Origin: Octopus sinensis
Lineage: Eukaryota
DNA: 64,000 bases
Assembly: GCF_006345805.1 (NCBI RefSeq)
Contig: NC_042997.1
Location: 183,830,001-183,894,000 of the forward strand
Direction of reading: 5' to 3'
In this document: piece by piece, positions 1 to 58,556 of the stretch
Numbering within the stretch: position 1 is the first letter of the stretch
Layout of the letters: each line of letters begins with the position of its first letter
Notes under the pieces: generated by a model
Seen by the model: the letters and a program-made list of their open reading frames with translations, nothing else
Databases searched by the model: none
Told to the model about the DNA's origin: nothing
Made by a program: the position numbers and the translations under genes

Positions 1-256
1 CATAACAAATGGGAAATGAGAGATAATCTGTGGATATTTAAGCGGTCTGAAATTACTTGTTTTCCAGCATATTTAAAAAAAGATCCATAAAGATCTAAGT
101 TAATTGAGAGTGCAATGATAAACTTCTGCATAATATAAAATACTTTGCCAATAATTATTAGGAAACCTCAGTCAACATCAGGCTTTTGAAAGCAAACCAA
201 AGCCCTTTCTGTTTATTAATTCATAACAATAAATGTAAAAATTTCATAATACATAC

Positions 257-335
257 TTGCTTTGTTCCAAAAATATTAGCGATATTTTCTTTAACTGAAC
301 ACTTTCCAATTGATGATACAATTAATGATCTTGAT
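257..335 (-). CDS. PMS2: PMS2 exon 6 (gene continues left of window)
   Basis: Pyrimidine tract + ctcag, gtatgt donor, phase 2-0; [26 protein letters not shown] aligns to human SIKENIGSVFGQKQ. Missed by the ORF track. Confidence 0.92.
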
Positions 336-1548
336 CTGAGGAATACCAAGAAAAGAAATTTTGAAAAGTGAGAAAGGAAATTCTTATCTTTCAAAATTAA
401 AATCTACAAATTCATTAATGGTTATAATAAACAAGTTTGGTATCAACATAATTTTTATGGCTAAATCTAAAACCTACAAAAATCCCCACAAAAATATATA
501 CAATTCAGTAGCAGGAAAAGAACTATATACAAATCGGTGTCAGAAAAAAATAATAAAATACTATTTTAACTACTAGTCACACAAGTCAACACACTACAAG
601 TACTAGCCTCAAGATGTCCCAACTCCAACTTTTATCTCTTCTGTTACAATAGTAGATTTTGCTCCTCTGAGCTAGAAAACAGTGTACTAACTAATACAAT
701 TACCTCCCACCCTCACATCAGCCATACTTTGCCTTAACCCACAAATAATTTTCCCTTTTTCAACAAGAGCTTGTTCCTTACTCATCTTATCATTGCAAAC
801 ATAAACCTACAAATGTTCCAACTGAACATCTACATCAAACTCATCAGTTGCCTTCACTTTCCAAACTTCAGAACATATCTCAATTCAGAAAGCCGTTGGG
901 AATATTACGTTCTTGTGATGGCCTTTTAGCAAGAAGAAACTTTTATCCCATCCACTCAATACCAAGAAACTGCAGATGAGCAACAATCTTTATGAACCTT
1001 TTGCGATTTGAGAGGCAATGATTTTAATTATCACTCATTCCTTAACTGAAAAGTAAGACTGGAATTTTACTGTGAAGCAAATATAAAAAAGTAGGCTCAT
1101 TTTCTACTGCATTGCACAGTCTATTTAAAAATAATTTTAGTTTAAATATGTAAAATAATAATAAATGCGCTCTTTTAAAGCTTAGCCAGGCTCATAGGCC
1201 CAGTTTCCCGGTTTCAATGGCGTATGTGTTCCTCAGCTGGACGAGACGCCAGTCCATTGCAGTGTTACTCATTTTTGCCAGCTGAGTGGACTGGAGCAAT
1301 GTGAAATGAAGTGTTTTGCTCAAGAACACAATGCGTTGCCCGGTCCAGGAATCGAAACCACAATCTTACGGTCATGATGCTGACACCCTAAACCACTTAA
1401 CCACGTGCCTCCACAGTTTAGATATGTGCTGTCACCTTTTTATTTATAAACAGAATTGATCACTAAGTTTAATGATTCTTCTTCCTTCCCAAAGATGCAA
1501 TTTTATTTACTTAAATTCCTTTAAAATGACTCTAAAAACATTACTTAC

Positions 1549-1718
1549 CCTTTTCCAACCTGGTTATAACATGAAATCCTCACACCGACGTTAATAAGGC
1601 AGTAGGAATTCAAAATTTGAACCATTTTAAAGAATTCTTTTTTCAAGTTCCTTAAAAATTCTTTATGCCTAACAGGTAGTGTTGAAAACAAATTCTCCAA
1701 TATGACAGTGCATCCTGG
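1549..1718 (-). CDS. PMS2: PMS2 exon 5
   Basis: ctgcag...gtaagt; [29 protein letters not shown]...YNQVGKG (PMS2-type [12 protein letters not shown]). Confidence 0.97.
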
Positions 1719-2511
1719 CTGCAGATGAAAATACATTTAAGTTAAATGCACATTCAAAGAAATTACATAAGGTTGAAGAAAGAAATGAAAATATTTTGAC
1801 TCTGAAACAATCATTTTACTAACATTTGAATTGTGTTTATTACAATCTCTAAAAGTCTACGTTTCTGAAATTATTTTTATTTATTATATCAATTAGTCAA
1901 AGAGCAGTAACTCTAGCTCTTAGAAAACCCATCAAGTTGACATGGTTGACATTGTAGATTAATGTTTGTAAGGAAAACATGGGAAAAGAAGGAGCTTCAG
2001 GGGTTTTAACAAAATTATCATCAATGGCCTAACAAGTATCTGTTATATGTGGGTTGAGAAAGAGATGACCACAGTATTGGCACAAACCAAAGAAGAGTTC
2101 ATCATTGAAACAAATGCCTTTCTTATAGATGATGCCTGATATGCCATTAATTAAAGATTGTGGACTATACCAATTACATAGAACATCATCATCGTTTAAC
2201 ATCCGCTTTCCATGCTAGTATGGGTTGGACGATTTGACTGAGGTCTGGTGAAACAGATGGCTGCACCAGACTCCAATCTGTTCTAGCAGAGTTTCTACAG
2301 CTGGATGCCCTTCCTAGTGCCAACCACTCCGAGAGTGTAGTGGGTGCTTTTACGTGCCACCAGCATGAGGGCCAGTTAGGTGGTACTGGCAACGGCCATG
2401 CTCAAATGGTGCTTTTTATGTGCCACCTGCACAGGAACCAGTCCAGCGGTACTGGCAATACAATAAATGTGAAAATAATTTTCTTTCTCTAAATGTTTTT
2501 ATAATACATAC

Positions 2512-2598
2512 TTGCTTTGTTCCAAAAATATTGGCGATATTTTCTTTAACTGAACACTTTCCAATTGATGATACAATTAATGATCTTGATCCTTGATT
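2512..2598 (-). pseudogene. Duplicate of PMS2 exon 6 inside intron 4 (pseudo-exon or candidate cassette exon)
   Basis: 2501-2591 matches 246-336 at 90/91 nt and keeps the gtatgt donor; candidate acceptor tacag at 2599-2603. Confidence 0.8.
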
Positions 2599-2714
2599 CT
2601 GTATTTGGTTTGCAATATTCTTGATGTAAACTCATCCATTGAAGCGACCTTCCCGAGATACAATGAAATAAGACACAAAAAGTAAGGAAATATAAAGAAA
2701 TGAATGCATCTTAC

Positions 2715-2920
2715 TTGTCTTGCACAAGGTGTGCGTGAATTAATCTTTCCATGATGATCAAATTGGAGTTTTGTACCAACTGAAGCATTTATATGTCTGG
2801 TGATAACTGTTAGTTTACTGAGGGCACACAATGAACTCAATGCTTCTCCACGAAACCCAAATGTTTCTACTAAGGTGAGGTCAGAAATATCCTTCAGTTT
2901 GGAGGTATAATGTTTCAAAG
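2715..2920 (-). CDS. PMS2: PMS2 exon 4
   Basis: ctcag...gtaaga; TLKHYTSKL...[16 protein letters not shown]...[21 protein letters not shown]. Confidence 0.97.
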
Positions 2921-3047
2921 CTGAGAAAATCCCAAAACAAAGAAAATTAATTTTAAACTTTTAAAATTTGGCATATAAGTATATTTTAAAGTTTTGTTTA
3001 TTTTCATTTATTTATCAGTTTTAAACACACACACAGTTCTATGGTAA

Positions 3048-3300
3048 TCATAATCATTGTTCGACCGTGGTCGAGACAATGGAATACCGTGCCACGCCAG
3101 ACCTCACAGTTCATCATAGCATTACGGAGGTCCTGTTGCTGGATGGCTGTATCCCTAGAGATTACATCAGGGTAAGAGAGTGTGCGCCCTTTGGTGTCGC
3201 GAGCAGATGGCTTCCAGAGGAGAAGAGTAGAAATTACCTCGTTTTCAGCTCTACAACAATACCCAGGAAACTGGACTCTTCTACCTTTCACAAGAGATGA
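3048..3300 (-). mobile_element. RTE-clade LINE 3' end
   Basis: RRVQF.G.CCRAENE..TLLLWKP...YPDVISRDT..DLRNAMM; matches 15594-15845. Confidence 0.85.
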
Positions 3301-4323
3301 TAAAGTGTATGAGGTGGTTTTACTACACTTGTATCTGAATTATTAATACTTCCCCTGAAGTATTAATACTGAGAAGAATTTGATTTGTTGTTAACTAAGA
3401 AAACTGAAGTGACAATGGTTGCATACATACAAAATAAAATAGCAACAGCAAAATTTGAATGAGACCCTGGAATTAGTAGTTCAACACATTACAGCCCTTT
3501 TTTTACGTCGATAATGACTCTACTTCAGATTTTGGATATTTAGTGAATTGCTGAAGTGGTATTCATTTTTTTTCCCCCTCTCTCATTTAAGTGGGGTAGT
3601 TTTCTGCAGGATAATCATTCAATTACAAGGTGAAAAAGTAATTTTCAGCGAAGTGAGACTAAGTTAAGAGTAACTTATCAAGGGACGCAACTCCTTGTCA
3701 TTGCTGAGATACATCTGTAAATTAGATTTTTTAACCTTACAGCCACTACACATCTCTTACCTTGGGTTCAAGATTTTTAAATATAACTAGCAGAGATACT
3801 CGGCCTTGCTCAGAATTAAAACTGCATAGATTTTTATTGCTTTACTTATTTCAGTCATGTGACTGCAGCCAAGCTGGAGCACCACCGTTGGTCGAAGAAA
3901 TCAATCACAAGATTTATTCATTGTAAGCCTAGTACTCATTCTGTCAGTGTCTTTTACCAAACTGCTAAGTTACAGGAATGTAAACACAGCAACATCAGTG
4001 GTCAAGCAATGGTGGGGGTACAAATACAAGACACACACACAAATATACACATATACACAACAGTCTTCTTTCAGTTTCCAAGTACGAAATCCACCCACAA
4101 AGTTTTGGTCGGTGCGAATGGCTTTATTATACGGTGCCATATTTTACAATTCTGTATATAATAATAATAATAATAATGGTATTTTTATATAAGCTTAAAG
4201 CTTATGCCGTTCACCGTGCAATGACTAAGGAAAATAGTCTAATAATATAAGCCCTCGACAGAAAAAAAAAAAAGACTTTCCCTGGCATTTGGAAAGAATT
4301 TAATGCAGTAACAATACACTTAC

Positions 4324-4410
4324 TTAAACCTTCAAAATTTTCTTCTGCGACGCCACAACCATTATCAATAACTTCAATCAACTCAGAACCATATTCTTTT
4401 AATTTAATTT
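4324..4410 (-). CDS. PMS2: PMS2 exon 3
   Basis: ttgcag...gtaagt; [29 protein letters not shown] (DNGxG motif); 87 nt, phase 1-1. Confidence 0.97.
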
Positions 4411-5546
4411 CTGCAAATCAAATTGACATTGATAAAAACACATAGATTAGATTAAATATTAGATAAGTTGTCATAGGAACTGCGAACTATTTACAATAAT
4501 TTGAAGTTGTTAATCCAATCCATCTGTGATAATAATAGCTATGATCAACTTTTACTACTTTACTAAACTCAAACTAGAAATACATTTCCATAGATAAAAT
4601 ATTTCCCATTGAGCAGATTTCCTCATGCTAGTAACTAAAATATGAAGCAGAAGCAGTACTTATTTTCAGGTACTGACAAAGTTGGAACCTCAGCTAATTA
4701 TAATTGTTAAGATGCAAAGTTTCTAAATATTTTTTGTCTCTTCCTTCTCGAGCCATGCCTGGCTCATAAGGGCCGGTTTCCCAGTTTCCTTGGTGTATAG
4801 GTTCCCCACCTGGATGGGATGATGGTCCGTCGCAGGTGAGCTGCAAGATGCAGGAAGAAAGAATGAGAGAAAGTTGTGGCGAAAGAGTCAGAAGTTCGCC
4901 ATTACCTTCTGTCAGAGTCACGTGGAGCTTAGGTGTTTCGCTCATAAACACACACATCGCCCAATCTGAGATTCAAACCCATGATCTAATCACTAGGCCA
5001 TGTGCCTCCAAATAATATAATAAACAGCTTTGTAAAAAACATTAAAAAAAGTGAAGTTAAATCATGCTACAGCGTTACTAAAATACCCATTTCATTTGAT
5101 GCAAAAAAAAAAGACAGAAAACATATGCTCACAAAAATAGCTTTATTAACAAAATATACTTATATTAAAGGATGGTTTGTATGCAGCAATAATAAAAAAA
5201 GGGCCTATTTCACTTTCTTATATTGTTATCAACACAAAACACTTTGAATGGAAACAAAACTAGGTACAGCACAATCTGGCTGTGACACCTTTCTACTACC
5301 CCAAATGAAAAGCTGTTTGATGACTCAGTTCAGAATGAGGTATGGCATAATCAAGATGGATCATTTCCGTACTTTACATTACTAATATTTACTTCTATAG
5401 CAATAGTCTACTCAAACAATGTTGGTAAGGCTTTCACAAAAACAACTAAGCATAAAATGATATTAACAAAATGTAGAAAGGCAGGTCCTTCAAAACTATT
5501 TCAATAAAAATGAAAAAATTTCTAAAACAATGATGTTGATACATAC

Positions 5547-5734
5547 CGACAGTTGTGGCTCCAGCATCTATACTGTTCTCAACAAGTTCTTTAACGCCTG
5601 TTGCTAGATTAACAATGACCTGACCAGAGCATATGTGATGAATTGATTTACGATCAATTGCCTGGATAGTATCTTTCTGAAATGTTCGATTCTTCAGAAA
5701 TTCTTCACTGTCATTTTGGCTGGAACTCGTAGCA
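5547..5734 (-). CDS. PMS2: PMS2 exon 2
   Basis: ctacag acceptor, gtatgt donor; encodes [40 protein letters not shown] (MutL GHKL motif I). Confidence 0.97.
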
Positions 5735-5811
5735 CTGTAGATATTAAAAATTACATGTCATTTAATATTTATTAGAAATAACTAAAACACTACCAAGTCA
5801 CTTATAAATAA

Positions 5812-6210
5812 CTAGCAGTATCACCCGGCGTTGCTCGGGTTTGTAAGGGAAATAACTATATAAGCATTTTTAGAGATGTAAAGTATAATAGCCATCTCAA
5901 TATGGCTAACCACAAAGGTGGGGGGGGGGTATTGTAGCTTTTTACGTTCTGAGATTTAATAATAAATTTTTAGAGAGTTACTTCCCTTATATATGCCAAA
6001 AATGCATTAAAAATGGGAAAAATAGATGGTAAATTTTTTTTTAAATCGTAGACTTATCGTAGACGCGCGCTAATACCCAGAAGGGCTCGATATGAATCAC
6101 GACTATAAGATACCCGGTTTTGGTTAAACTGCACCGCAAAATGTGGGAGTAGTTAGGAATCTAAATCGTAGGAGACAGACAGCACACAACCTCACTTTTA
6201 TATATAAAGA
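5812..6210 (-). mobile_element. Non-autonomous Helitron copy 1
   Basis: On - strand A|TC...hairpin CCCG/CGGG...CTAG|T. Confidence 0.8.
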
Positions 6211-9334: not shown

Positions 9335-9707
9335 CTGCCGTAACTCTGAGCACCTTTTCAAACTCCACCTGTCTAACACCCGTGGATACGTTTACAAAGT
9401 CAGAAAACAGCACAGCTCCCATGACTTTCGGAAACATTTTTTCACGCTAAGAGTTGCTGAAGCATGGAACAGACTGCCAGCATCAGTTGTTAGTTGTCGG
9501 AGCACTGCATCCTTCAAAACTTCCATGCTTCCTAAGATTCGCCAACACTGCACCTGATTTTCTCCCCTCCATACACGCAAGCATGTAGCTGACTCGAACA
9601 CTGTTCGCTTTCCAGACATTAGTACATTACTGCATATGCTTTATACGCACTTTTGACAAGTTGTGGTGCACCTGAACACTGTATACAATAATTTCATTAT
9701 TATTATT
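9335..9707 (+). mobile_element. CR1/L2-group LINE 3' end
   Basis: Same family as 6707-7285. Confidence 0.88.
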
Positions 9708-10153: not shown

Positions 10154-10176
10154 CTGTCACTGTTATTTTCTTCCAT
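10154..10176 (-). CDS. PMS2: PMS2 coding exon 1 (MEENNSD-S; alternative in-frame ATG at 10182)
   Basis: ATG GAA GAA AAT AAC AGT GAC AG|gtatgt; phase 2 matches the next exon. 23 nt, the same length I recall for human PMS2 exon 1. Confidence 0.75.
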
Positions 10177-11351
10177 CTTCATCTATCGTCACGACGCGGG
10201 AGTTTTAATACATTCATATCATTTAACAGTTTCCCAACAAACTCATTAACGAGCGCTTTGTATATTCTTAATTTCTTTACTTTTCTTTTTCGTTTTATCA
10301 ACGAGGAATTCTTGCCAATATATAAAATAATATAAAATAGTAATTAATTTATATCGAACAAAAAGTTTTAATTTACTGTAAACAATTTATAATTGTTGAT
10401 GCTATGAAGAAAGATAAATACTGAACATCCTTCGAAGCGGTGTAGTTATTGTAAATTTCATTAAAAACTTACAAACTATTTTAAGACTTTTACTCAGTAT
10501 ATAATTATTCTGCGTTGATTGTTATATATAGTAAATAGTAAATAAAGATTTTAATTCACTAAAAAAGCGCAAAACAAATCCATTAATATGTTTTTATAAT
10601 TAATTATACCGAGTTCCTTACAGAGATAGTTCCGAGCTGTTGGTATACGAATAAAGTTCAATTGATAAACAAGAGAATTATTCTTTTTTCGCTAAGATAA
10701 AAACTAAATTACATTCTAATAAAACTGTATTTTACATATTTAGTTTCAAAAGAGTTTCGTTTTGATCATGCTAACTGTGGTTCAGCTAATTTAAATTTGT
10801 GCGCGCGTGGTGTTTCTGCGAGCGTCAAAAGAGCATAGGACGCACTTTTGTGTGTGAAAAATTTCTAATTGACCGAAATTTATGGGACCGCTCGAAATGA
10901 TTATTAATTACAATTTAGAAGTGAGAGTATAAGTTGATAGCGAATTGGATCAGAAGAGTCTTCTTTCTCGGGTTATCATCTATATAATGTATACATTAAA
11001 AAAAAAAAAAGAATCAATGGAAATAATTATTCAAAGACGACATCACTTGAAAAACAATAGTTAGTTTTAAATTATTGAATGTAGTGAAGATTAATATTCA
11101 TAAGAATTACGCGGTGAAAAAAACAACAACATTAGCTCAATATTATTTTTAGACATTTCAGTAAGCACGGGAGATAACACCAGATATGCTTTAGTGTTAT
11201 TAGACCTCTTCAGTTATGTATAGATTTCACTGTAACTGCAGAAGTAGTGACGAGATAACCACTAAGTAGATGTAAAATATTGTGTACGAGTAGACATGAA
11301 AAATCAGCTAATTTAAATATTTACTTATTCCCATCTTTATTTCGGCAAGTA

Positions 11352-22035: not shown

Positions 22036-22654
22036 TCATCATCATTGTTTAACGTCTGCTTTCCATGCTAGCATGGGTTGGAAAATTTGACTGAGGACTG
22101 GCGAACCAGATGGCTGCACCAGGATCCAATCTTGATCTGGCAGAGTTTCTACAGCTGGATGCCCTTCCTAAAGCCAACCACTCTGAGAGTGTAGTGGGTG
22201 CTTTTACGTGTCACCAGCACGAGGGCCAGTCAGGCTGTACTGGCAACGGCCATGCTCAAATGGTGTTTTTTATGTGCCACCTGCACAGAAGTCAGTCCAG
22301 CGGCACTGGCAATGACCTTGCTCAAATGTTTTTTCACATGCCACCGGGACAAGTGCCAGTAAGGCGACGCTGGTAACGATCATGCTTGAATGGTGCTTTT
22401 TACATGCCACCGACACGGAAGCTAGTTAGCTGCTCTGGCAACGATCACACTCAGATGATGCTCTTAGCGCTCAACTAGCACGGATGCCAGTCATCGAATT
22501 TGATTTCAATTTCGATTCCGATTTCACTTGCCTCAACAGGTCTTCGCGAGCAGAGTTTAGTGTCCAATGAAGGAAAGGTATGCATAAGTGGGCTGGTTAC
22601 ACCCCTGGCATAGGCCACGAGGTAATGGTCTCACTTGGCTTGCCAGGTCTTCTC
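22033..22654 (-). mobile_element. (GAT)n-tailed repeat family B, longest copy
   Basis: Conserved GGAAGGGCATCCAGCTGTAGAAAC and ...GGACGTTAAACGATGATG end. Other copies ~2184-2458(-), 21515-21765(+), 25140-25570(-), 26600-27622(+), 32030-32290(-), 34183-34445(-), 34495-34667(+), 43262-43632(+), 45350-45937(+), 50043-50400(-), 51296-51733(+), 57083-57320(-), 57836-57975(-), 58213-58497(+). Confidence 0.9.
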
Positions 22655-24092: not shown

Positions 24093-26802
24093 ACAATAGA
24101 AAAAAGAAGGTGATAAACTGTTATGTTGTTGTTGATATAGTTGTTGCTAATTGTAAATTATATCAGAAGTATAAGTTTAGTATATTCATCTGCACTTAGA
24201 TTTACTCTGCTGATGTATTCTCACATTTGCTACATTGCATTCAGTTCATCTGTAAATATCCCCTCATTAATAGTTCAGTAGCTTGGTTTTTCTTTCTCCT
24301 GTCTCTTAATATATTAGCTGATCTTTGCATAGATATAGTGCATATTCTTTCATACCTAGGAACCTTCTCCCTTTCTAGATTTTTGTATTTTCATTAGATC
24401 TCCTATTTTAGTTATCTATCTCCTACATATTCTTGTCATTGTTATATCTACTTTTCAATGTTGGCAAAACTATCAGTATCACCTGTCATTGCTTGGGTTT
24501 GTTTCGACCCTTTAGGATTGGAATCTTTGAAAAGTAAAATTTTGCATTATGTAGCTTGTTATTCTCTTCAAGTGAAAATTTTTCTGGTTGAAATACACCA
24601 AAAAATGGCGACACAGCAGTCAAAAAATCGTAAAAAAATAGGGATTTTCGTAGAAAAAAAGCACCTTTTTGATGTAAATAATTTTTGGTGTTAACATGGT
24701 CTGATTTGAAATTTTCTTCTATGGAAGGAAGAGCAAGCCTTCTCCTATCATACTCTCAATTTTGGTCAACTTGCGCCACAGGGTCTCGGAGGAGATAGTG
24801 TTAGTTGAAGGCTACCAAACCTGCCATACACAGACAACTTCAGCTTATATATATAGAGAGATTAGACCTTACTGCTTCTCAAGAGTTTTATCTTTCTCTG
24901 AGACAAGTTCCTTCCACACAGCACTTTTTCACTTACCTGCACACAATCAACTAATGCCTTAATGTCTAACTACCTTCTCATTTCACATGTACTCTATTTT
25001 TCATGCAAGTTAACATTGTGCATCTAATAAGATAACTCATTTCTCACCAGCTTTTTGAAGATCTTCAACATTTAGTGCTTAGTCTTTGCTGCTATGCAAC
25101 ATTATACTTCTTAGGCATGAATAGAAAAACCTTTGGTATTCATCATCATCATCATCATCATTTAATGTCCACTTTCCATGCTAGCATGGGTTGGACTATT
25201 TGACTGAGGACTGGTGAACCAGATGGCTGCGCCAGGCTCCATCTGATCTGTTTTCACAGCTGGATGCCCTTCCTAACGCCAACAACTCCAAGAGTGTAGT
25301 GGCTGCTTTTATGTGCCACTGGCATGAGGGCCAGTCTAGCGGTACTGGCAACGGCCACGCTCTAAATGGTGTTTTTTACATGCCACCTGCACAGGAGTCA
25401 GTCCAGCGGCACTGGCAACAACCTCGCTTGAATGTTTTGTTCACGTGCCACCTGCACAAGTGCCAGTAAGGCGACGCTGGTAACGATCATGCTCAAATTG
25501 TACTTTTTACGTGCCCACCGGCATGGAAGCCAGACAGCTGCTCTGGCAGTAATCCTGATCAGATGGAGGTGCTTCTAACCCTCCAACTATATACTCATCA
25601 CAGCTACTTCCATCACTAATCTTTGTCATATTATTAGAATTATTGCATAACTGAAGACTGGAATCTTTTGATTTTCTTGTATTACATGTGTAGTAAATGC
25701 ACTCTGTTCATTTCCTTCAAACCTCCTTAATTTCAGTTGAGGGCTTGTACAATAGAATAGGGATTTCTTTCTGCTAGAATATGGTGACCTTTTAAATGAG
25801 ACGTGTCTCTTATCTCTCATAGAAAATATGTAATCTAGATAAAAAATTATATATTTCTTCTAGCCAGCCATCTGAATTGTTCATTGAATTCATTTCATAA
25901 GAAGGCGGTGAGCTGGCAGAAACGTTAGCATGCTGGGCGAAATGCTTAGCGGTATTTCATCTGCAATTACATTTTGAGTTCAAATTCCACCAAGGTCGAC
26001 TTTGCCTTTCGTCCTTTCAGGGTTGATAAATTAAGTACCAGTTACACACTGGGGTCGATGTAATCAACTTAATCCCTTTGTCTGTCCTTGTTTGTCCCCT
26101 CTATGTTTAACCCCTTGTGGGCAATAAAGAAATAAGAATTCATTTCATGAGATCTTCTATTATCTACTCTTGCATAACTAAGCTCCTCTGCACTTTTCTA
26201 TATCCATTTGCTTGCTTTCAGTACAAGGAACTAAATTCTACCAAATCTCTTTACATATTAAACTGCTATGGTTTTGAAGTCTTTATTTACTAAATACATT
26301 TCTCTTTGACCTAATGCCAGTTGTACTTCACTGTCCACCAAGTCAAGAGTAAAGACTAATCAGTTTCTGGGCATGTTCTTCCCACTTTGAAATTCGCAAA
26401 ATCCCTCTCTTTCAGATTTTGTTTTGTGCTTTGGGAATGATTTACAAAATATCTCTAACTTTGCCATGTTTAATTCCAACATTAAGCATATATTTACTAA
26501 TATTGAAGTTAAACTAATCCTCATGTATGAATATAAACTGAGTGTCCCTGCTTGTATTTGGTTTGGGAAATAAGCTATTGAGAACAATCAATTTCAAAGA
26601 ACAAGTGTGATCGCTGACAGAGTGGCTAACCGGCTTCTGTGCCAGTGGCACATAAAAAGGTCACCATTCGAGTATGATCATTACCAGCGTCGCCTTACTG
26701 GCACTTGTGCATGTGCTAATAGGGCACCATCCAAGCATGATCGTTGCCAGAGCAGCCAACTGGCTTCCGTACCCGTGGCACATAAAAGGGCACCATTCGA
26801 GC

Positions 26803-27358
26803 GTAACCCCTTATGTTTGTCTCTGTTTTTATTCATTCATCATTCTTCCTTGCTTTGCCTCTGTTCATTCATTCATTCCTTTCTTTCCCACCCTAAAGGA
26901 TAGGAAGAGAGCTACAGCTAAAGGGGTATAGTGTGTTAAAAGGGAGAGTGAGTGATAGGCAGTTGTATGATAGTTGATAGTAAGGAAATTGAATAGAAGC
27001 AACATAACCAAGCAGTTGATAAAAGAGAGAAATGGAAGTTAGAGAACCAGAGCAAGAGAGTGATAGAGAGGAGAGGGTAATAGAAAAGCTGAGACCCCCC
27101 TTCGGTCACGACACAGACCATGGGATTGCACCTAGAAAGTTACCATCCCAGGCACAAGTCTGGGCAAGGTTGTTTATGGAAGACCAGCAGTCGCCCATGC
27201 ATACCTGCCTCCTCTCTCCACGCCACCAGTGTTATCCAAGGGAAAGGCAAGGGCCGATACAGCTTGGTACCTGTGACGTTGCAACTTATTTCTACAGCTG
27301 AGTAAACTCGAGCAATGTGAAATAAACTGCCTTGCTCAAGAACACAACATGCAGCCCG
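26803..27358 (+). repeat. Inserted copy of 555-bp local duplication
   Basis: Interrupts a GAT-tailed repeat (26600-26802 + 27359-27622). Confidence 0.95.
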
Positions 27359-29110
27359 CTTCACTGGAACCTGTGCCAGTGGCACGTGTAAAAAGATTTG
27401 AGCGAGGTCATTGCCAGTACTGCCTGACTGGCCCCCATGCCGGTGGAATGTAAAAAGCACCCACTACACTCTCGGAGTGGTTGGCGTTAGGAAGGGCATC
27501 CAGCTGTAGAAACTCTGCCAGATCAAGATTGGAGGCTGGTGCAGCCATCTGGTTTGCCAGCCCTCAGGCAAAATCGTCCAACCCATGCTAACATGGAAAG
27601 CGGACGTTAAACGATGATGATGAAATCCAGCTTAAATCAATATGAGATACCAAAAAGATTACATTTTAGTTTAATGTTTTTCAAGTGTATCTTTGGAAAA
27701 CGATTGTTTCTGTTGAAATTATTTAGTTAACAACAGCTGTCAGTTTTCTTTTCTTTGTCCTTTTGAAACTTAATATATATTTCATGAACTCAATGTATGT
27801 GTGAAAGTTCAGTTTTTCATAATTTCTATCAAAGCCTCAAGAGATCTACTTTCTCTTTCAGTCCTTCGATGTCATAAACTATTGAAGTTAAATCTCTCTC
27901 TCTCTCTCTCCCCACACACATATATCATACATACATACATACATACTTATGTATACATATATGTATGCATCTAAGTATTTTATCAGCTGGATTTAAATAC
28001 TATATGGACTGAGATCTCTGTTGACTGGTCACTAGTATGTGCATTATGGACTTAAGCCTACTAATTTAGGCAGTCAAAGGCTATGATATTGCTTTGGTTT
28101 AGCAGTTAGTTCAGTTAAGTGGTTTATAGCAAATGTGGTGTTTGAATCCTGCATGTGATGTTACAACTTTTATCTATTTTCTGTATGGAATGAGATGTGT
28201 CTGTGTATGTATGTATGTATGTGTGTGTAAACGATGTGAAATTGTAATATCCGTAAGTTGATGAACGAAATGAATTTGTTTCTCCATTTTCTCATTTGTA
28301 TTATGAATTTACGGGAAAAATATTTTTTACCTTCACCCATTTAATACAATAAATGAATTAATTGCATTGCAATTAAAAGCATTTATGTATTAAGAATTTG
28401 GGTACTTTACCAGCAGTATATTGGATAATTGATATCCCATAGTGGGTTACATTCATAACCCCTATCTTACTTTGTATGTGTATATATATATATTATAATA
28501 ATAATATATAAATATATGCATATATACATATATGTACATACCTACATCTATATGTATATATACATGCATATATGGCTACAGGACAAAAAAAAAACGTTGA
28601 ACACAATGAGAAATGAAAACATAAAAACAAAAACATAGAAACAAACTTTTTTTGAACAACGAAAACAAACAAACAGAGAAACAAGGCATACAACATAAAG
28701 AATATTCTCCTACTTCAGTTGTCCCTGTTTTATCTACTCCATGTTTCGAAGGGGAGATAATCCGTCCTAATTAACGTTTTTATATGTTAGCTCGATATCT
28801 GAGCTAAATCTCAATATCTGAGTGTTTCCTCACGTCCACAAAGTTTAATAATTTTTGTTTCTTTGTATGTAGTCTGACAAACTATCTACAAGGCTTTCAT
28901 GGATACAAAACCTTTGGTAGCTCTATGACCAGAATTTAACTTCTTGTTTTACTAACTACTGATTTTTTAAATTTAGAATGTGGTTCTTTTCTTATGTTTT
29001 ATTGACTATGTATATATAAATATGTGTGTGTGTGTATGTATCTTTCAGCTATTCAAGAAAAATTTAATGACTTCAATTTCTTATATGTTGCATTTTCAAT
29101 CTGCTTATAG

Positions 29111-34055: not shown

Positions 34056-36427
34056 GTAAGTACTTCTGTCCTTTTTTATTTTTTAGTGGCATTTGAGTGT
34101 AGTATTTTTTCAGTATTCTTAAACTGTTCTTCTCAATCTTATCAACCTTCCTCATTATTACTCCTTCCCTCAGTTGAGGGGTCATCATCATCATTATCAT
34201 CATTGTTTAATGTCCGTTTTCCATGCTAGCATGGGTTGGACAGTTCGACTGGGGTCTGGGAGGCCGGGAGGCTGCACCAGGCTCCAGTCTGATCTCGCAG
34301 TGTTTCTTCAGCTGGATGCTCTTCCTAACACCAACCACTCCGTGAGTGTAGTGGGTGCTTTTTACGTGCCACCGTCACGGGCCAGGGGAGGCTGGCAACG
34401 GCCACGATCAGTTGGTGCTTTTTATGTGCCACTGGCATGGAAGCGTCTTGTAAATTATTTGGTGACATCATTGCTGCTGGCACCACATGACAAGCACCCA
34501 GTCCACACTGTAAAATGGTTGGCATTAGGAAGGGCATCCAGCTATAAAAACCATACCAAAGCAGACAATAGAGCATGGCACAAGTCTTCTGACTTGCCCG
34601 GTCCTGTCAAACCATCCAACCCATGCCAGCATGGAAAGTAGACATCAAATGATGATGGTGATGATGATTGGTTGTCAGATTAGATTGAGTTTCAGTTAAG
34701 TCTAGTAAAGAGTTGGATTCAGTAAATTTGTTGGAATATTTTTGTTTAATAAGCTGACATTCTGAAAACAACTGTAAATTATTCTGAAATCTTTTTGCTT
34801 TAGATCGAACCAGCTATTGTAATAATTGATAGATTTTAGTTAATTGCAATGTCCGTCATTTTGGTGACATGCAATCACATGACTTGTGATTAATCTATTT
34901 GTGTCGATATCGAGAGGTTTTATCTTTCTCTGTTATAGTTACTTTTTGTCAACAGTGCTAATTACTGTTTTGAATGTAAATTATATTGATAAGGAGTTTT
35001 ATTTATACATTGCTTTATAAATAGCTTTCTACCCTGCCATTTTTCTAGTGTAAGTGGTGGTGGTGGTGGTGGTGGTTGCAGCTGAGGAGGTGAGACTTTT
35101 GTTTTGAGGTCCATCCTCTACTTGTGTCCATTTGCAAGTATTGCACCAACTGATAAGGATACCAAGTTTCAAACCAAGAACATTATGCTTCCTGGCTGAA
35201 TACTCTACTCACAGACTGATTATTTGGTATGAAGCTAAGTTTTTATTAATAAGAAAATGTTGATGATAATTAGTAATAATGGTAACATATAGTGAATACA
35301 CAAATAAAATATAATGAGTTATTAAGTAGTATCTGATATGATAAATATTTGTCAGTGCTATAATTACGATGTGTATGTCAAGCAAGTAAGATATTGGCTA
35401 TGTCTCCAAATGTATCTGCAGTTACTTTTGACATCTAATTACCAGAAAGTCCAATAATTAATGTAGAAGAAAATTATTGTGATATTAATCAGCTTCAATT
35501 AAGTGAACATGTCTTTTCCATTTTTGTTGCTCTTTATCTTTTCTAAGTTGTTTTTTTAATTGAATTTTTGTTTATTTTTTATGCCAAGTACAATGTTCTT
35601 TGAAAAATTACTTTTTAATAGGCGTAGAAGAGATTGTGTGGTAAGTAGCTTGGTTCTGGGTTCAGTCCCACTGTGTGGCACCTTAGGCAAGTGTCTTCTA
35701 CTATAGCCTCAGGCCGACCAAAGCCTTGTGAGTAGATTTGGTAGACGGAAACTGAAAGAAGCCCATCGTATATATGTATATATATGTTTGTGTTTGTGTG
35801 TCTGTGTTTGTCCCCCAACATTGCTTGACAACCGATGCTGGTGTGTTTACATCCCCATAACTTAGCAGTTTGGCAAAAGAGACCGATAGAATAAGTACTA
35901 GGCTTACAAAGATTAAGTCCTGGGGTCGATTTGCTTGACTAAAGGCGGTGCTCCAGCATGGCCGCAGTCAAATGACTGAAACCAGTAAAAGAGTAATATT
36001 ATTTTTTTATTTTCAAAATGTCTCATAACTTTTTTTATGGCTCTCTTAATGCTAATCCTTCCACTGCCAAGTGTCGGTTGTACATAATTTTATTGTCAAG
36101 TTCATGCAAATGTCTCAGCTTACAAAAATCTTCCCACTTGTTCTATAATTAAGAAATAGATCTAAAGTCTAGAAAAAAATATCACAATTTTATCCATTTC
36201 ATTCTATGTTGTTGATGACTTTTAGAAAAACAAAAGTATCTCAGCTAATGATTTTCATCCAATGTCTTAGGTTTGAAACAACAACAAGTAAACTATTATA
36301 ATCAGCAGCTTTTTCTTCATTTAATACCAAAATTAGTTACTAGTAGATATATTCACATAGTTAAAATGCTATTAATATTGTGTGTAATTATTAAAAGAGT
36401 CAAGTTTTTTTTCACTTTTCCATCCTA

Positions 36428-43262: not shown

Positions 43263-44133
43263 CCAGCCTCGCCTGGCCCCCGTGCCGGTGACACGTAAAA
43301 GCACCATCCGTTTCGTGGCCGTTTGCCAGCTCTGTCTGGCCCCCGTGTTGGTGGCACGTAAAAGCACCATCCATTCGTGTCCGTTGCCAGCCTCGCCTGG
43401 CCCCCGTGCCGGTGACACGTAAAAGCACCATCCGTTCGTGGCCGTTTGCCAGCTCTGTCTGGCACCTGTGTGGGTGGCACGTAAAAAGCACCCACTACAC
43501 TCACGGAGTGGTTGGCGTTAGGAAGGGCATCCAGCCGTAGAAACACTGCCAGATCTGACTGGGCCTGATGAAGCCTTCCAGCTTCACAGACCCCAGTTGA
43601 ACCGTCCAACCCATGCTAGCATGGAAAACGGACGCTAAATGATGATGATGATTCCCCTTGTCCCCTCTATGTTTAGCCCCTTGTGGGCAATAAAGAAATA
43701 AGAAACTGAAAGAAGCCTGTCATGTGTCTGTGTATCTGTGTTTGTCCCCCTCCCCACTGCTTGACAACTGGTGTTGGTGTGTTTATGTCCCTGTATGTTT
43801 AGCTAAATCCCTTCAAGGCGGTGCCCCAGCATGGCCGTTGTCGGATGACTGGTGCAAGTAAAAGATAATGTTTTAAGAACAGCAAAAGACATTTGCAACT
43901 TTGGAAGTCAGACAAATAAAGGATCCATTACACCAAATTTTATATATAATTCAGGTTTTAGTTTGTATGCTTTTTTTTACTTTTTGTATTCCAAAGAGTA
44001 GATACCAATAACTACTACAAGGAACTTAAATATTAATGATACCAAGTTTGGTAGAAAATCATAATATTTAAATGGTTTGAAACTGTTGCCTTCATCCTTT
44101 CATTTAATATCAAATAAATGCATTTATGTATTC

Positions 44134-45031: not shown

Positions 45032-46046
45032 GGTATAAGTATCTTTATGAAGTTGTATGTGTGGTGGTAGTTTTTACAATTCTATAGTAAGTCTTGTAAC
45101 CACTCAACTGTGAAATGGGTCTTTTTATAGATGAAGCAGACTGTAACAAAGATATGGATCCTGCTCATTGACAGAACACAATGTTCATACCCAACTATGA
45201 AACCGAACACGCTCAAGTAAAATAGATTTTGTTACAGGTCAGGCTGACTGTAACAAGAAGCGTTGTCAGCTTTCAGGTTTCAACTTATGTGGGTTAGTAG
45301 ACCAGCATCTGAACCCCACAGCAGTTGTACTACTTTTGAAAATGTTTATTGTTTTATCTGGCTGCTTGCGAAGACCTGTTGAGGCAAGTGAAATCAAAAT
45401 CAAATTTGATGACTGACATTCGTGCTAGCAGGGTGCAAAGAGCACCATATGAGCGTGATCGTTGACAGAGTGGCTAACCGGCTTCCATGCCAGTGGCACA
45501 TAAAAGGCACCATTTGAGTGTGATCATTATCAGCGTCGTCTTATTGGCACTTGAGCCCCGTGCTAATAGGGTGTTAAGAGCACCATCCGAGCATGATCGT
45601 TGCCAGAGCGGTTATCTGGCCTCCGTGCTGGTGGCACGTAAAAGGCACCATTCGAGCGTGATCGTTACCAGCATTGCCTTACTTGCACCTGTGCCAGTGG
45701 CATGTGTAAAAGATTCGAGCAAGGTCATTGCCAGTACAGCCTGACTGGCCCCGTGCTGGTGGCACGTAAAAAGCACCCACTACACTCTCAGAGTGGTTGG
45801 CATTAGGAAGGGCATCCAGCTGTAGAAACTCTGCCAGATCAAGATTGAAGCATGGTGCAGCCATCTGGTTCACCAGCCCTCAGCCAAATCGTCCAACCCA
45901 TGCTAGCAGGGAAAGCGAACGTTAAACGATGATGATGCCCATTTATTTTTAAAATGAGCATTAACAGTATTAAATAAATGATTGCTTTAATTAGAAATTC
46001 AAGACTAACAGTCTACTAATCTGTTGGGACCTGTTTTGTATTTCAG

Positions 46047-49873: not shown

Positions 49874-51703
49874 TAGCAATAGTATAATTATGTTATATAT
49901 TTCCCTTTTTCTATATGTAATAAGTCTAAAGGAGATGATTCATAAAATTCTTTGGTAATTGAGATTAAGATTTGTTTTTTATATAATTTCAAATAACAAC
50001 TCTTATTCTTTTTGTATCTTGTCAAAGTAGCTGTTTCTTCAATCATCATCATCATCATCGTTTAACGTCCGTTCTCCATGCTAGCATGGGTTGGACGGTT
50101 CGACCGGGGATCTGGGAAGCCAGAAGGCTGCACCAGGCTCCAGTCTTATCTGGCAATGTTTCTACAGCTGGATGCCCTTCCTAACGCCAACCACTCCGTG
50201 AGTGTAGTGGGTGCTTTTTACGTGCCACCTGCACAGGTGCCAGGCGAGGCTGGCAACGGCCATGGTCGGATTGGTGTATTTTATGTGCCACCAGCACGGA
50301 AGCCAGTCAAGGTGGCGCTGGCATCGGCCACGAGTCGGATAGTGCTTTTTACGTACTACCAGACCAGGGATCCTGGCTGGTTCAATTCGATTTCGGGAAA
50401 CTTTAATATGCTTCACTATGTAACTACATGAAGACGTTATGTAACTGATGGAAATTGAATATTTAGGAATGTAGTAAACCCTTGTAAGGGGTATAATTAT
50501 TTGAATGTGTAAATATAAATTTGAATTCTAGACAAAGATGAGAAGTATATTGAAAGATAGACTTGTGTTGCTGTAGGTATGCAATAAAAATAAATGATAC
50601 GCTATATTGAAAGTGAGTCAACATTTCTGATCTCCATGAAATTTCAAATTAATTTTATGTTCAAGGTTTTAAAAAGGCACAGGAGTGGCTGTGGTAAGTA
50701 GCTTGCTTACCAATCACATGGTTCCAGGTCCATTCCCATTATGTGGCACCTTGGGCAAGTGTCTTCTACTATTGCCTCAAGCCAACCAAAGCCTTGTGAG
50801 TGGATTTGGTAGACGGAAACTGAAAGAAGCCCATCGTATATATGTATATATATATGTGTGTGTGTTGTGTGTGTGTATATGTTTGTGTGTCTGTGTTTAT
50901 GTCCCTGTAACTTAGCGGTTCGGCAAAAGAGACCGACAGAATAAGTACTAGGCTTACAAAGAATAAGTCTTGGGGTCAATTTGCTCGACTAAAGGCAGTG
51001 CTCCAGCATGGCCGCAGTCAAATGACTGAAACAGGTAAAAAGAGTTGTTGTTCAGTGTTACATTTTAGGTACTTGCAAACTGAATTAAGTATGCTTGGTG
51101 CAATATTTGTCTTTGGCTTAACTCTTTAGCATTTAAGTTTGCCATATGTGGCTCAAATATTATGTTTAATGTTCAAATTGACCGGATTCAACCTCTCACA
51201 TCTACCTATAATATCATTCTAAAACTAAACAGTTACATTACTGAAATCTCAAAGCTACAAAATAATGCATAATTAATTCAAAACAATATGAATACCTTGG
51301 ATCGTAGGGTGACCTGCTGTGCTTGAGGAGACCTATTGAATTAAGTACATCAACATCAAAATAAATATCAAATGGAAATTGTAGTTGTGATACCTGTGCT
51401 GGTGGCACGTAAAAAGCACCATCCAAACGTGGCTGATGCCAGCGCCGCCTTGACTGGCTTCTGTGCCGGTGACACGTAAAAAGCACAAACCGATCGTGGC
51501 TGCTGCCAGCCTCGTCTGGCACCTGTGCTGGTGGCACGTAAAAAGCACCCACTACACTCACGGAGTGGTTGGCATTAGGAAAGACATCCAGCTGTAGAAA
51601 CACTGCCAGATTGGACTGGAGCCTGGTGCAACCTCCTGGCTTCCCAGACCTCAGTTGAACCGTCCAACCCGTGCTAGCATGGAAAACGGACGTTAAACGA
51701 TGG

Positions 51704-51734
<31 letters not shown>

Positions 51735-55954: not shown

Positions 55955-58556
55955 TAAAAAGAGTAACTGATATTGGATTGTTTTATTTTTTTCATTTTCT
56001 GTTTATTTGTGATTAAACAGTTGACTAACTAGGCGTAGGAGTGGCTGTGTGGTAAGTAGCTTGCTTACCAACCACATGGTTCTGGGTTCAGTCCCACTGC
56101 ATGGCATCTTGAGCAAGTGTCTTCTACTATAGCCTTGGGCCGACCAAAGCCTTGTGAGTGGATTTGGTAGACGGAAACTGAAAGAAGCCCGTCGTATATA
56201 TGTATATGTGTGTGTGTGTCTGTTCCCCCAACATCGCTTGACAACTGATGCTAGTGTGTTTACGTCCCCCGTAACTTAGCGGTTCGGCAAAAGAGACCGA
56301 TAGAATGTACTTGGCTTACAAAGAATAAGTCCTGGGGTTGATTTGCTCAACTAAAAGCAGTGCTCCAGCATGGCCACAGTCAGATGACTGAAACAAGTAA
56401 AAGAGTAACTATGGCAACAGAGTGTTCCGAGTGAAAATGGAGAAACTGCCTGTTCATCAAACCATTTCTATTTCTTTACTTTATAATCTCTTGATAGTGA
56501 GAATATTGTAATCAGATGTAAAGCAGGCACAGGTGTAGCCATGCAGTTAAGAAGTTTGCCTCCTACCATTTATTCTCAGGTTCTGTCCTGCTGTGAGACA
56601 TCTTGAGCAAGTGTCTTCTACTATAGCCTCAGGCTGATCAAAGCCTTGTGATTGTGGTTGGATTTGGTAGATGGAAACTGGAAGAAGCTTATCGTGTGTG
56701 TTTGTGTGTACCCTTGTTTTGACATCACATGACGATTGCAAACAAGCACCACTTGCATATGGGTTAGGTTGTTCTTTTGTAGTCTTCCATGAAAAAAATC
56801 TATTGAGAAACACAGTGTAAAGTGTTGTGTATACACATAAACTTGATTATAGTGTTAAATTTTTCTGTCAGAAAATATATTGAAGTCTTTACAAATTCTC
56901 AACTATTACAAGCAGTTTTGAAATATTTATTACAAAATAAATAAATAATATATAAAATTCAATAATTCTGACTTATCTAATATCTACTTTCATGTCAATA
57001 ATATGAAAGCTTAAAATATGAAGATAATGAGGATGATTAAGAAACCTTTATAGTGTGCAGTTACTGTTTTCTTAAAGAGTATCATCATTATCGTTTAACG
57101 TCCACTTTCCATGCTAGCATGGGTTGGACGATTTGACTGAGGGCTGGCGAACCAGGCTCCAATCTTGATCTGACAGAGTTTCTACAGCTGGATGCCCTTC
57201 CTAACGCCAACCACTCCAAGAGTTTAGTGGGTGCATTTTACATGCCACCAGCATGCGGGCCAGTCAGGCGGTACTGGCAATGACCTCGCTTGAATCTTTT
57301 TACACATGCCACCGGCATATTTGCAATTATAGCACCTAGTTTTTTTCTTTCACATTCTGACAAAAATTTTGTTTTCAATTCATCCAGGTTCACTAAAATA
57401 CCCACCAAGCATGCTCAACCTCACTCTATAGAAATTGCCTTTGTACAAATGTGAGAAATTTTGAATGTCAGATTCAGTAGAGCAACAAACAAAATGCCTT
57501 GTAGAATTTAGTGATATTCTGAGTTCAAATCCATCAGGGAATGTTTTTTCATTGTTGCAAAGTTTGATAAATTAAATCACCAGTCAAGTACTGGTATCAG
57601 TTTGATTGACTCAACTCTCACCCTACAAAATGTGTAAGCCTTGTACCAGTAATAATAATTGCAGTATGATAAAGAACATGAAAAGTAACATAAAAATATA
57701 CCAAGGCCCCGACTTCACACACAGTCCAAAAATAAACTCTGCTTGCTCAGTAGATATTCTGCACAAGATAACTTCAATTCATTAGCACAGTATATCTTGG
57801 TTTGTCATTGTGTTTGTGCATATATATATATATTATCATCATCGTTTAACATCCACTTTCCATGCTGGCAGGGGTTGGACGGTTTGACTGAGGTCTGGCG
57901 AGCCAGAAGGCTGCACCAGGCTCCAGTCCGATCTGGCAATGTTTCTACAGCTGGATGCCCTTCCTAACACCAACTCATGCCGGCACCGCATAAAAACCAC
58001 TCAGGCCAGTGCCACTTCAAAGGCACTCATGCCAGTGCCATGTGTAAAGCACTGTTGCTGGCACCATGTTGAAGCATCTGTGCTGATGCCACATAAAAAG
58101 CACCCAAAGCATTCTGTAAAGAGGTTGGCATTAGGAAGGGCATCCAACCATACAAACCATGACAAAACTGTCCAAGCCATGCCAGCATGGAAAACAGACA
58201 TTTAATGATAATGTGCCGGTGGCATGTAAAAAGCACCATCCGATCGTAGCCGTTGCCAGCCCCGTCTGGCCTCCATGCCAGTGGCACGTAAAAAGCACCA
58301 TCCGATCATGGCCGTTGCCAGCCTCGTCTGGCACCTGTGCCGGTGGCACATAAAAAGCATCCACTACACTCACGGAGTGGTTGGCGTTAGGAAGGGCATC
58401 CAGCTGTAGAAACACTACCAGATCAGACTGGGCCTGGTACAGCCTTCTGGCTTCCCAGACCCCAGTTGAACCATCCAACCCATGATGATGATGATGATAT
58501 ATTATTTATATATTTATGTGTTTCTGATATATGTAAGTGTGTGTGTATATATTTAA

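Follow-up and report, generated by a model that had tools for sequence, protein, structure and literature searches.

The PMS2 gene and the composite insertion in its intron 4

The window, by which we mean the whole stretch of 64,000 nucleotides (nt; 64 kilobases, kb) of Octopus sinensis DNA that was analysed, carries the PMS2 gene on its minus strand (annotated product XP_029637835.1, a mismatch repair endonuclease), and intron 4 of this gene holds, out of order and upstream of exon 5, a second copy of exon 6 that abuts a repeat resembling a short interspersed nuclear element (SINE). When reverse-complemented, the window's first 6 kb match O. sinensis chromosome CM016859.1 (GCA_006345805.1) at 100% identity, and spliced mapping of XP_029637835.1 to the O. 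sinensis locus returned 22 coding exons, every intron being of the GT-AG type. This mapping agrees with the exon numbers and phases given in an earlier note on the stretch, which had been made from the letters alone. All positions are those of the window, and a slash within a sequence marks a junction.

The copy is visible as a direct repeat of 95 nt, 98% identical, between 242-336 and 2497-2591. As the earlier note had it, exon 6 is reproduced in intron 4 at 78 of its 79 positions, the sole exon difference being native A278 against G2533 on the plus strand, a GCT to GCC change that is synonymous in the exon-6 frame; the GTATGT donor is intact (CAA/GTATGT), and the native acceptor has been replaced, not copied, since the homology between native sequence and copy ends at the 5' boundary of exon 6. 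The note had further proposed that a TACAG at 2603-2599 (minus strand) would give an 87-nt exon, and translation bears this out: the candidate exon (2598-2512) runs from phase 0 to phase 0 without a stop, and it is compatible with its possible neighbours, exon 4 ending and exons 5 and 7 both beginning in phase 0. The frame is open in O. sinensis and Octopus vulgaris alike, which is to be expected anyway because the substitutions are so few. In its intron-6 part the O. sinensis copy has a 4-nt deletion in common with the O. vulgaris copy and two private substitutions. None of the other 21 PMS2 coding exons is duplicated within the locus. The sequence just upstream of the copy was also considered as a diverged exon 5 tail; it is ordinary intron 4, found as well in the octopods that lack the insertion.

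The copy forms part of a composite insertion, in which about 411 nt (2594-2184) replace about 18 nt (GAAATTTTCTGTCTTATG) of intron 4 in O. sinensis and O. vulgaris. In the order of the gene's sense, the insert consists of the four nucleotides AAGG, exon 6 (79 nt), the start of intron 6 (56 nt, of which 52 are present in the copy) and a repeat of about 275 nt. Repeat and PMS2 fragment share one orientation and meet at the very point where the homology to intron 6 stops, with nothing between them. At the other end, AAGG is missing from the empty site (AATC/GAAATTTT…), where three substitutions would be needed to turn GAAA into AAGG, and among 21 exon 3' ends compared, that of exon 5 alone (…GGAAAAGG) ends in AAGG. 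Comparison of filled and empty sites revealed no target-site duplication, either around the whole insert or around the repeat alone, but instead the target deletion of about 18 nt; the last ATG of the repeat tail overlaps the target …TTATG. Such a repeat was not found beside native exon 6 in the loci of any of the three species compared (O. sinensis, O. vulgaris and O. bimaculoides), so that exon fragment and repeat were not copied together as a DNA unit. The abutting repeat, the AAGG at the 5' junction and the composite nature of what looks like a single event had all been missed by the earlier note.

The repeat belongs to a family with at least 11 copies in the window, in both orientations, and further copies in the three octopus loci. 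Each member combines internal units, about 65 nt long and variable in number (…GGTGGCACGTAAAAAGCACC…), with a 3' core that is conserved in the family and a tail of (GAT)n; several have the leader …GTACATCAACATCAAAAATCAATGGAAATTGTAGTTGTGATA… in common, and the conserved 3' end reads …GTTAAACGATGATGATG, the tail adjoining the target at the intron 4 insertion. Since longer members extend further 5', the intron 4 repeat is 5'-truncated. A scan of positions 1-6000 against Rfam, together with a transfer RNA (tRNA) scan, gave no match to the repeat, and "SINE-like" is therefore a description, resting on copy number, size and tail, and not a classification. In O. vulgaris the inserted repeat (at about 9405-9410 of the locus L005) carries an internal deletion of about 27 nt relative to O. 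sinensis (…CTCTCGG/GCATCCAGC…), and between the two species the repeat part is 87% identical, as against 98% for the PMS2-derived part.

Distribution among octopods and age

The earlier note had proposed orthologous loci in other octopods as a check, and this comparison was carried out. The loci of O. vulgaris (OX597814.1, L005) and O. bimaculoides (CM046601.1, L006) were reached through their annotated proteins, and a fourth octopod is represented by four short Logan contigs (L001-L004, from runs SRR11869384/85/90/91) found through a read-through open reading frame of exon 4 (P0038). O. vulgaris carries the copy at the orthologous site, 98% identical over 207 nt, and in both it and O. sinensis the exon-6 copy and the SINE-like repeat occur together. 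In the alignment of orthologous intron 4, neither the copy nor the repeat is present at this site in O. bimaculoides or in L001-L004, where the uninterrupted intron reads …CAAACCAAATACAAAATCGAAATTTTCTGTCTTATG/TTCTATGTAATTGG… (also given as …ACAAAATCGAAATTTTCTGTCTTATG/TTCTATG…). The presence and absence across species, the composite structure and the junction sequences are thus established. They place the insertion in an ancestor shared by O. sinensis and O. vulgaris, later than the divergence from O. bimaculoides.

Table 1. Features of the PMS2 locus and repeat copies in the window
Feature	Positions	Strand	Basis
PMS2 coding exon 1 (ATGAAG…, 29 nt)	~10154-10182	minus	Coordinate transfer from L007
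PMS2 exon 2	end at 5548	minus	Protein mapping
PMS2 exon 3	4411-4325	minus	Protein mapping
PMS2 coding exon 4, 206 nt, phase 0 end (…TPCARQ)	2715-2920	minus	Mapping of XP_029637835.1; tblastn of PMS2 homologues
Intron 4, pre-existing 5' part, in four octopods; carries TACAG 2603-2599	2595-2714	minus	Alignments, including L001
Junction AAGG, equal to the last 4 nt of exon 5	2591-2594	minus	Filled versus empty site
Exon 6 copy, 79 nt	2512-2590	minus	78/79 identical to native 335-257
Copied start of intron 6, first 56 nt with GTATGT donor; 52 nt here	2460-2511	minus	Five-way alignment
SINE-like repeat, 5'-truncated, sense	2184-2459	minus	(GAT)n tail abuts …ATG/TTCTATG
Intron 4, pre-existing 3' part	1719-2183	minus	Aligns with empty-site species from TTCTATGTAATTGG on
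PMS2 coding exon 5, 170 nt, phase 0 to 2, ends …GGAAAAGG	1549-1718	minus	Protein mapping; tblastn
Native PMS2 exon 6, 79 nt, source of the copy	257-335	minus	Mapping and alignments
Native intron 6 start; 25 nt lost in O. sinensis	215-256	minus	Five-way alignment
Other copies of the repeat family, near	22037-22313, 25150-25418, 27356-27622, 34196-34432, 43397-43650
Further copies of the repeat family, near	45688-45937, 50050-50311, 51437-51708, 57083-57317, 58281-58483

Rate of change and splice potential of the copy

The earlier note had set a clean exon copy against a decayed intron flank with an indel of about 20 nt. The indel is there, but its cause lies elsewhere: native O. sinensis intron 6 has suffered a lineage-specific deletion of 25 nt between 243 and 242, about 14 nt past the donor, and the deleted bases are retained by native O. 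vulgaris, by native O. bimaculoides and by both copies. The flank of the copy has therefore not decayed in this respect, and the argument from a preserved exon beside a degenerate intron fails. Counted on the five-way alignment, the changes private to the O. sinensis copy are one in the exon part (79 nt; GCT to GCC) and two in the intron part (about 54 nt), and those private to the O. vulgaris copy are one in the exon part (TCA to TCT) and none in the intron part; shared by the two copies, and so dating from before the species split, are no exon change, one 4-nt intron deletion and at most two intron substitutions, which are ambiguous and fall where the native copies differ among themselves. 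The copy lineages have thus accumulated two substitutions in 79 exon nt against two to four in about 54 intron nt, and by Fisher's test the two parts do not differ (P = 1.0, or 0.22 with the ambiguous shared changes). Nearby introns of O. sinensis and O. vulgaris differ by 4.5% (337 mismatches in 7494 aligned nt), a rate at which 3.6 exon differences between the two species' copies would be expected where two of 79 are seen (P for two or fewer = 0.31).

The divergence of the copies, then, fits neutral evolution. Since native exon 6 shows no difference between the three species, O. bimaculoides included, the near-identity of copy and source appears to reflect the youth of the one and the invariance of the other, and not selection on the copy. 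Gene conversion was considered as a way of maintaining the similarity and is not needed, each species' copy having a private change and the degree of similarity fitting the age of the insertion.

To judge whether the copy could be spliced, its sites were scored with position weight matrices derived from the 21 acceptors and 21 donors of PMS2 itself, against a background of intron base composition. The donor of the copy (CAA/GTATGTAT) scores 9.3 bits, the real donors ranging from 0.4 to 12.4, and is a usable 5' splice site. The proposed acceptor (gaatattgcaaaccaaatacag/AAT) scores -2.9 bits. Each of the 21 real acceptors scores higher (-0.9 to 14.9, leave-one-out), and among 1818 intronic AGs the candidate stands at the 55th percentile; its pyrimidine tract, described as poor by the earlier note, indeed has a pyrimidine fraction of 0.41, against 0.53-0.94 for the real acceptors, so that it falls short of a usable 3' splice site. 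Two neighbouring AGs do no better, one giving an 80-nt exon with a frameshift (-4.4 bits) and the other an in-frame exon of 108 nt (-1.7 bits). Transcripts that included the copy would read CCTTGTGCAAGACAA/AATCAAGGATCAAG at the junction with exon 4 and, downstream, either GGAACAAAGCAA/CCAGGATGCACTG into exon 5 or GGAACAAAGCAA/CTTCAA… into exon 7.

At the protein level, the N-terminal domain of octopus PMS2 aligns without gaps with human PMS2 structures (1H7S, 1EA6 and others; E about 1e-132). The insert would sit between …PCARQ and PGCTV…, two to three residues ahead of the G-T of GHKL motif IV, and 29 additional residues there would probably disturb the ATPase fold. The cluster of Octopus PMS2 proteins at 90% identity holds four members (one each from O. 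bimaculoides and O. sinensis and two from O. vulgaris), none of them with the insert. A collection of 5.8 billion proteins was queried with exons 4-6, with a padded N-terminus and with the hypothetical isoform carrying the extra 29 residues. What matched was annotated PMS2 from Octopus and Argonauta, along with a read-through open reading frame of genomic origin (P0038); the isoform query returned nothing above 57% identity among candidates of about 200-640 residues, and no junction-bearing protein was found among the 5.8 billion, a search of low power in a collection that holds no octopus PMS2 transcript fragments. The top match to the padded N-terminus query, from Pan troglodytes, was rejected as an artefact of the human C-terminal padding that had been added. 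We find no sign of an altered mismatch-repair protein in the octopus.

Most likely, the copy has no role at present: it would be a pseudo-exon that drifts neutrally, having inherited a strong donor and lacking a real acceptor. Of the two possibilities that the earlier note had left standing, that of a constrained alternative exon finds no support in the neutral divergence, the weak acceptor, the restriction to two species or the lack of an annotated isoform; that of a recent dead copy is supported by the same divergence and by the absence of the copy from O. bimaculoides and the fourth octopod.

Origin of the insertion and alternative readings

On balance, we think it probable that the whole is a young, neutral, composite insertion made by a reverse transcriptase that switched from the repeat RNA to PMS2 precursor messenger RNA (pre-mRNA); for an RNA template of the PMS2 fragment, taken by itself, the scales tip only slightly in favour. 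Under this scenario, a reverse transcriptase of the type encoded by long interspersed nuclear elements (LINEs) would have started from the SINE tail where intron 4 was broken, copying the SINE RNA; it would then have switched template onto PMS2 pre-mRNA being transcribed at the locus, from which intron 5 had been spliced out while intron 6 was retained, and copied about 139 nt of it, stopping 4 nt into exon 5. The end of the complementary DNA (cDNA) would finally have been joined to the upstream DNA by end-joining, leaving a small target deletion and no target-site duplication. The hint that this RNA was spliced comes from AAGG, which is identical to the last bases of exon 5. The gain of both parts in the same two species, and the absence of both from O. 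bimaculoides and L001-L004, points to a single event. From these observations, together with the splice scores and divergence given above, we infer that the template was RNA, that both parts came in one event and that the copy has no function.

Several observations pull the other way: (i) the lack of a target-site duplication and the loss of about 18 nt are atypical of classical target-primed reverse transcription. (ii) The mark of a spliced junction is only 4 nt long, with a chance probability of about 1/256. (iii) The junction ATCAAG-G-ATCAAG could come from short templated synthesis during end-joining. (iv) Source and insertion belong to one gene and are separated by only 2.2 kb, as would also be expected of a local patch templated by DNA. 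(v) Both private exon substitutions are synonymous, where 24% of the possible changes would be (P = 0.058), although two out of two is not evidence for constraint because n = 2. (vi) G2599, the last base of the CAG that would serve as acceptor, is a derived A-to-G change (ACAAAATC to ACAGAATC) fixed in O. sinensis and O. vulgaris and absent in both empty-site species; it lies 5 nt upstream of the insertion junction and gives the stretch ahead of the copy its one in-frame CAG. Chance may account for the change, as may a mutation made during the repair event; it does not make the acceptor strong, but the copy may see weak use as an exon. (vii) The absence of the insert from the protein collection is weak evidence, because that collection lacks even ordinary octopus PMS2 transcript fragments.

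Points (i), (iii) and (iv) are also what favours a DNA template within the same single event, in which a free 3' end at the intron 4 break, or at a SINE insertion being resolved, invaded exon 6 and intron 6 farther downstream and was extended by about 136 nt before end-joining of the polymerase-theta type, which would also have produced the ATCAAG repeat: source and insertion lie 2.2 kb apart in one gene, a short direct repeat such as ATCAAG-G-ATCAAG is typical of templated end-joining, and the site has a target deletion without target-site duplication. We consider this, the main alternative, possible but rather unlikely. It leaves unexplained why the 5' breakpoint falls 0-1 nt from an exon boundary and why AAGG equals exactly the end of exon 5, and the fragment stands in the sense of the SINE, as would be the case for one continuous cDNA; moreover, patches made by templated end-joining are usually much shorter and drawn from closer sources. 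That two independent events coincided, exon 6 being duplicated as DNA and a SINE inserting by chance at its 3' edge, or the reverse, is very improbable. A family with so many copies in 64 kb makes chance proximity conceivable, but the SINE begins exactly at the end of the intron 6 homology and by itself has no target-site duplication, the two parts have the same species distribution, and jointly they replace a single empty-site stretch of about 18 nt. An assembly artefact, a collapsed or mis-joined read having placed exon 6 in intron 4, has a negligible probability: the independent O. vulgaris assembly (GCA_951406725.2, OX597814.1) carries the same copy at the same orthologous site, with private substitutions of its own, and misassembly was rejected on this ground.

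Points (v) and (vi) bear on function. If the copy were a nascent cassette exon, included at a low level or in particular tissues, PMS2 would receive 29 extra residues before motif IV or lose exon 5, and the ATPase of MutL-alpha would be altered. An in-frame, stop-free stretch of 87 nt in both carrier species, a donor as strong as the real ones, two private substitutions that are both synonymous and a derived acceptor G common to the two carriers are what such an exon would have. Nevertheless, this is improbable, since the acceptor ranks below all 21 real ones and amounts to an average intronic AG, divergence equals the intron rate, the copy is confined to two sister species, the annotated proteins lack it and the junction turned up in none of the proteins searched; in addition, the insertion would fall near motif IV in a region that is gap-free from octopus to human, probably disrupting the fold. 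The more specific version, in which an RNA-mediated duplication of the gene's own exon was followed by the A-to-G change and so gave rise to a nascent alternative exon, included at a low level or tissue-specifically in O. sinensis and O. vulgaris and adding 29 residues by motif IV, is a shade less credible again. The duplicate is an ordinary young, apparently neutral pseudo-exon delivered with a mobile element, an event of a known kind, and the RNA origin at which it hints is testable and as yet weakly supported.

Chimeric retro-insertions made by template switching, in which a cellular RNA in sense orientation stands 5' of a 5'-truncated retroelement, have been documented, among them U6/L1 and mRNA/L1 chimeras and the tripartite chimeras of Magnaporthe (PMC2104539; bioRxiv 10.1101/2025.02.02.635956). 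The octopus insertion resembles them in that a tailed, 5'-truncated 3' retroelement part is fused to a 5' part derived, on the reading we prefer, from cellular RNA, in the same sense and within one insertion. It differs in several respects: (i) the 3' partner is SINE-like and not a LINE. (ii) The 5' partner would be a partly spliced pre-mRNA of the recipient gene itself, inserted 2.2 kb from its source. (iii) The site shows a small target deletion in place of a target-site duplication, and the RNA origin of the 5' part rests on 4 nt.

In human cultured cells, L1 elements also insert independently of their endonuclease, at double-strand breaks and with deletion of the target. The absence of a target-site duplication, the short target deletion, the 5' truncation of the element and the presence of filler at the 5' junction are common to these insertions and to the one described here, in which, however, 139 nt taken from the host gene make up the filler. 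The copy can also be compared with intronic pseudo-exons and their exonisation, for instance that of Alu elements in primates: here too an inserted intronic sequence has one good and one poor splice site and could become a cassette exon through a few point changes, and a derived A-to-G change has already made an AG. In contrast to Alu exonisation, the donor and the body of the would-be exon derive from a genuine PMS2 exon, and if it were included, 26 PMS2 residues would occur twice, in frame. Tandem duplication of exons, which yields mutually exclusive or cassette exons, likewise duplicates an exon within its own gene and in a compatible phase; unlike the products of that process, the octopus copy is out of order upstream of exon 5 and 2.2 kb from its source, has neither the 5' intron flank nor the acceptor, is fused to a mobile element and occurs in two sister species only.

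The primate PMS2 pseudogenes (PMS2CL and PMS2P) lie outside the gene, at loci of their own, and are large segmental duplications that span many exons. The octopus copy, in contrast, comprises one 79-nt exon and 56 nt of intron inside the gene itself, although, like them, it is a partial PMS2 copy able to confuse read mapping and variant calling. Being 98.7% identical to the real exon 6 over 79 nt and lying 2.2 kb from it, it can cause short reads to be mapped wrongly; copy and native exon can be distinguished in O. sinensis by GCC/GCT and in O. vulgaris by TCT/TCA. With regard to genome evolution, the locus offers a clean, species-dated case of a mobile element returning a piece of a host gene's own transcript or DNA to that gene, and such events are one way in which exon duplicates with ready-made splice donors could arise.

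Two observations concern the remainder of the locus. Beyond exon 1, the window extends over about 54 kb upstream of PMS2, rich in interspersed repeats and microsatellites. In O. vulgaris (L005, OX597814.1), the PMS2 protein annotated as isoform X1 (CAI9716479.1, 845 residues) lacks from its C-terminal domain the stretch PQSLELTASNEIILLNSIEIFNRNGFS, which is kept in PMS2 of O. sinensis and O. bimaculoides, and a second O. vulgaris model (734 residues) terminates at the point where CAI9716479.1 loses it; this looks like an annotation or assembly problem affecting one exon, and not like biology.

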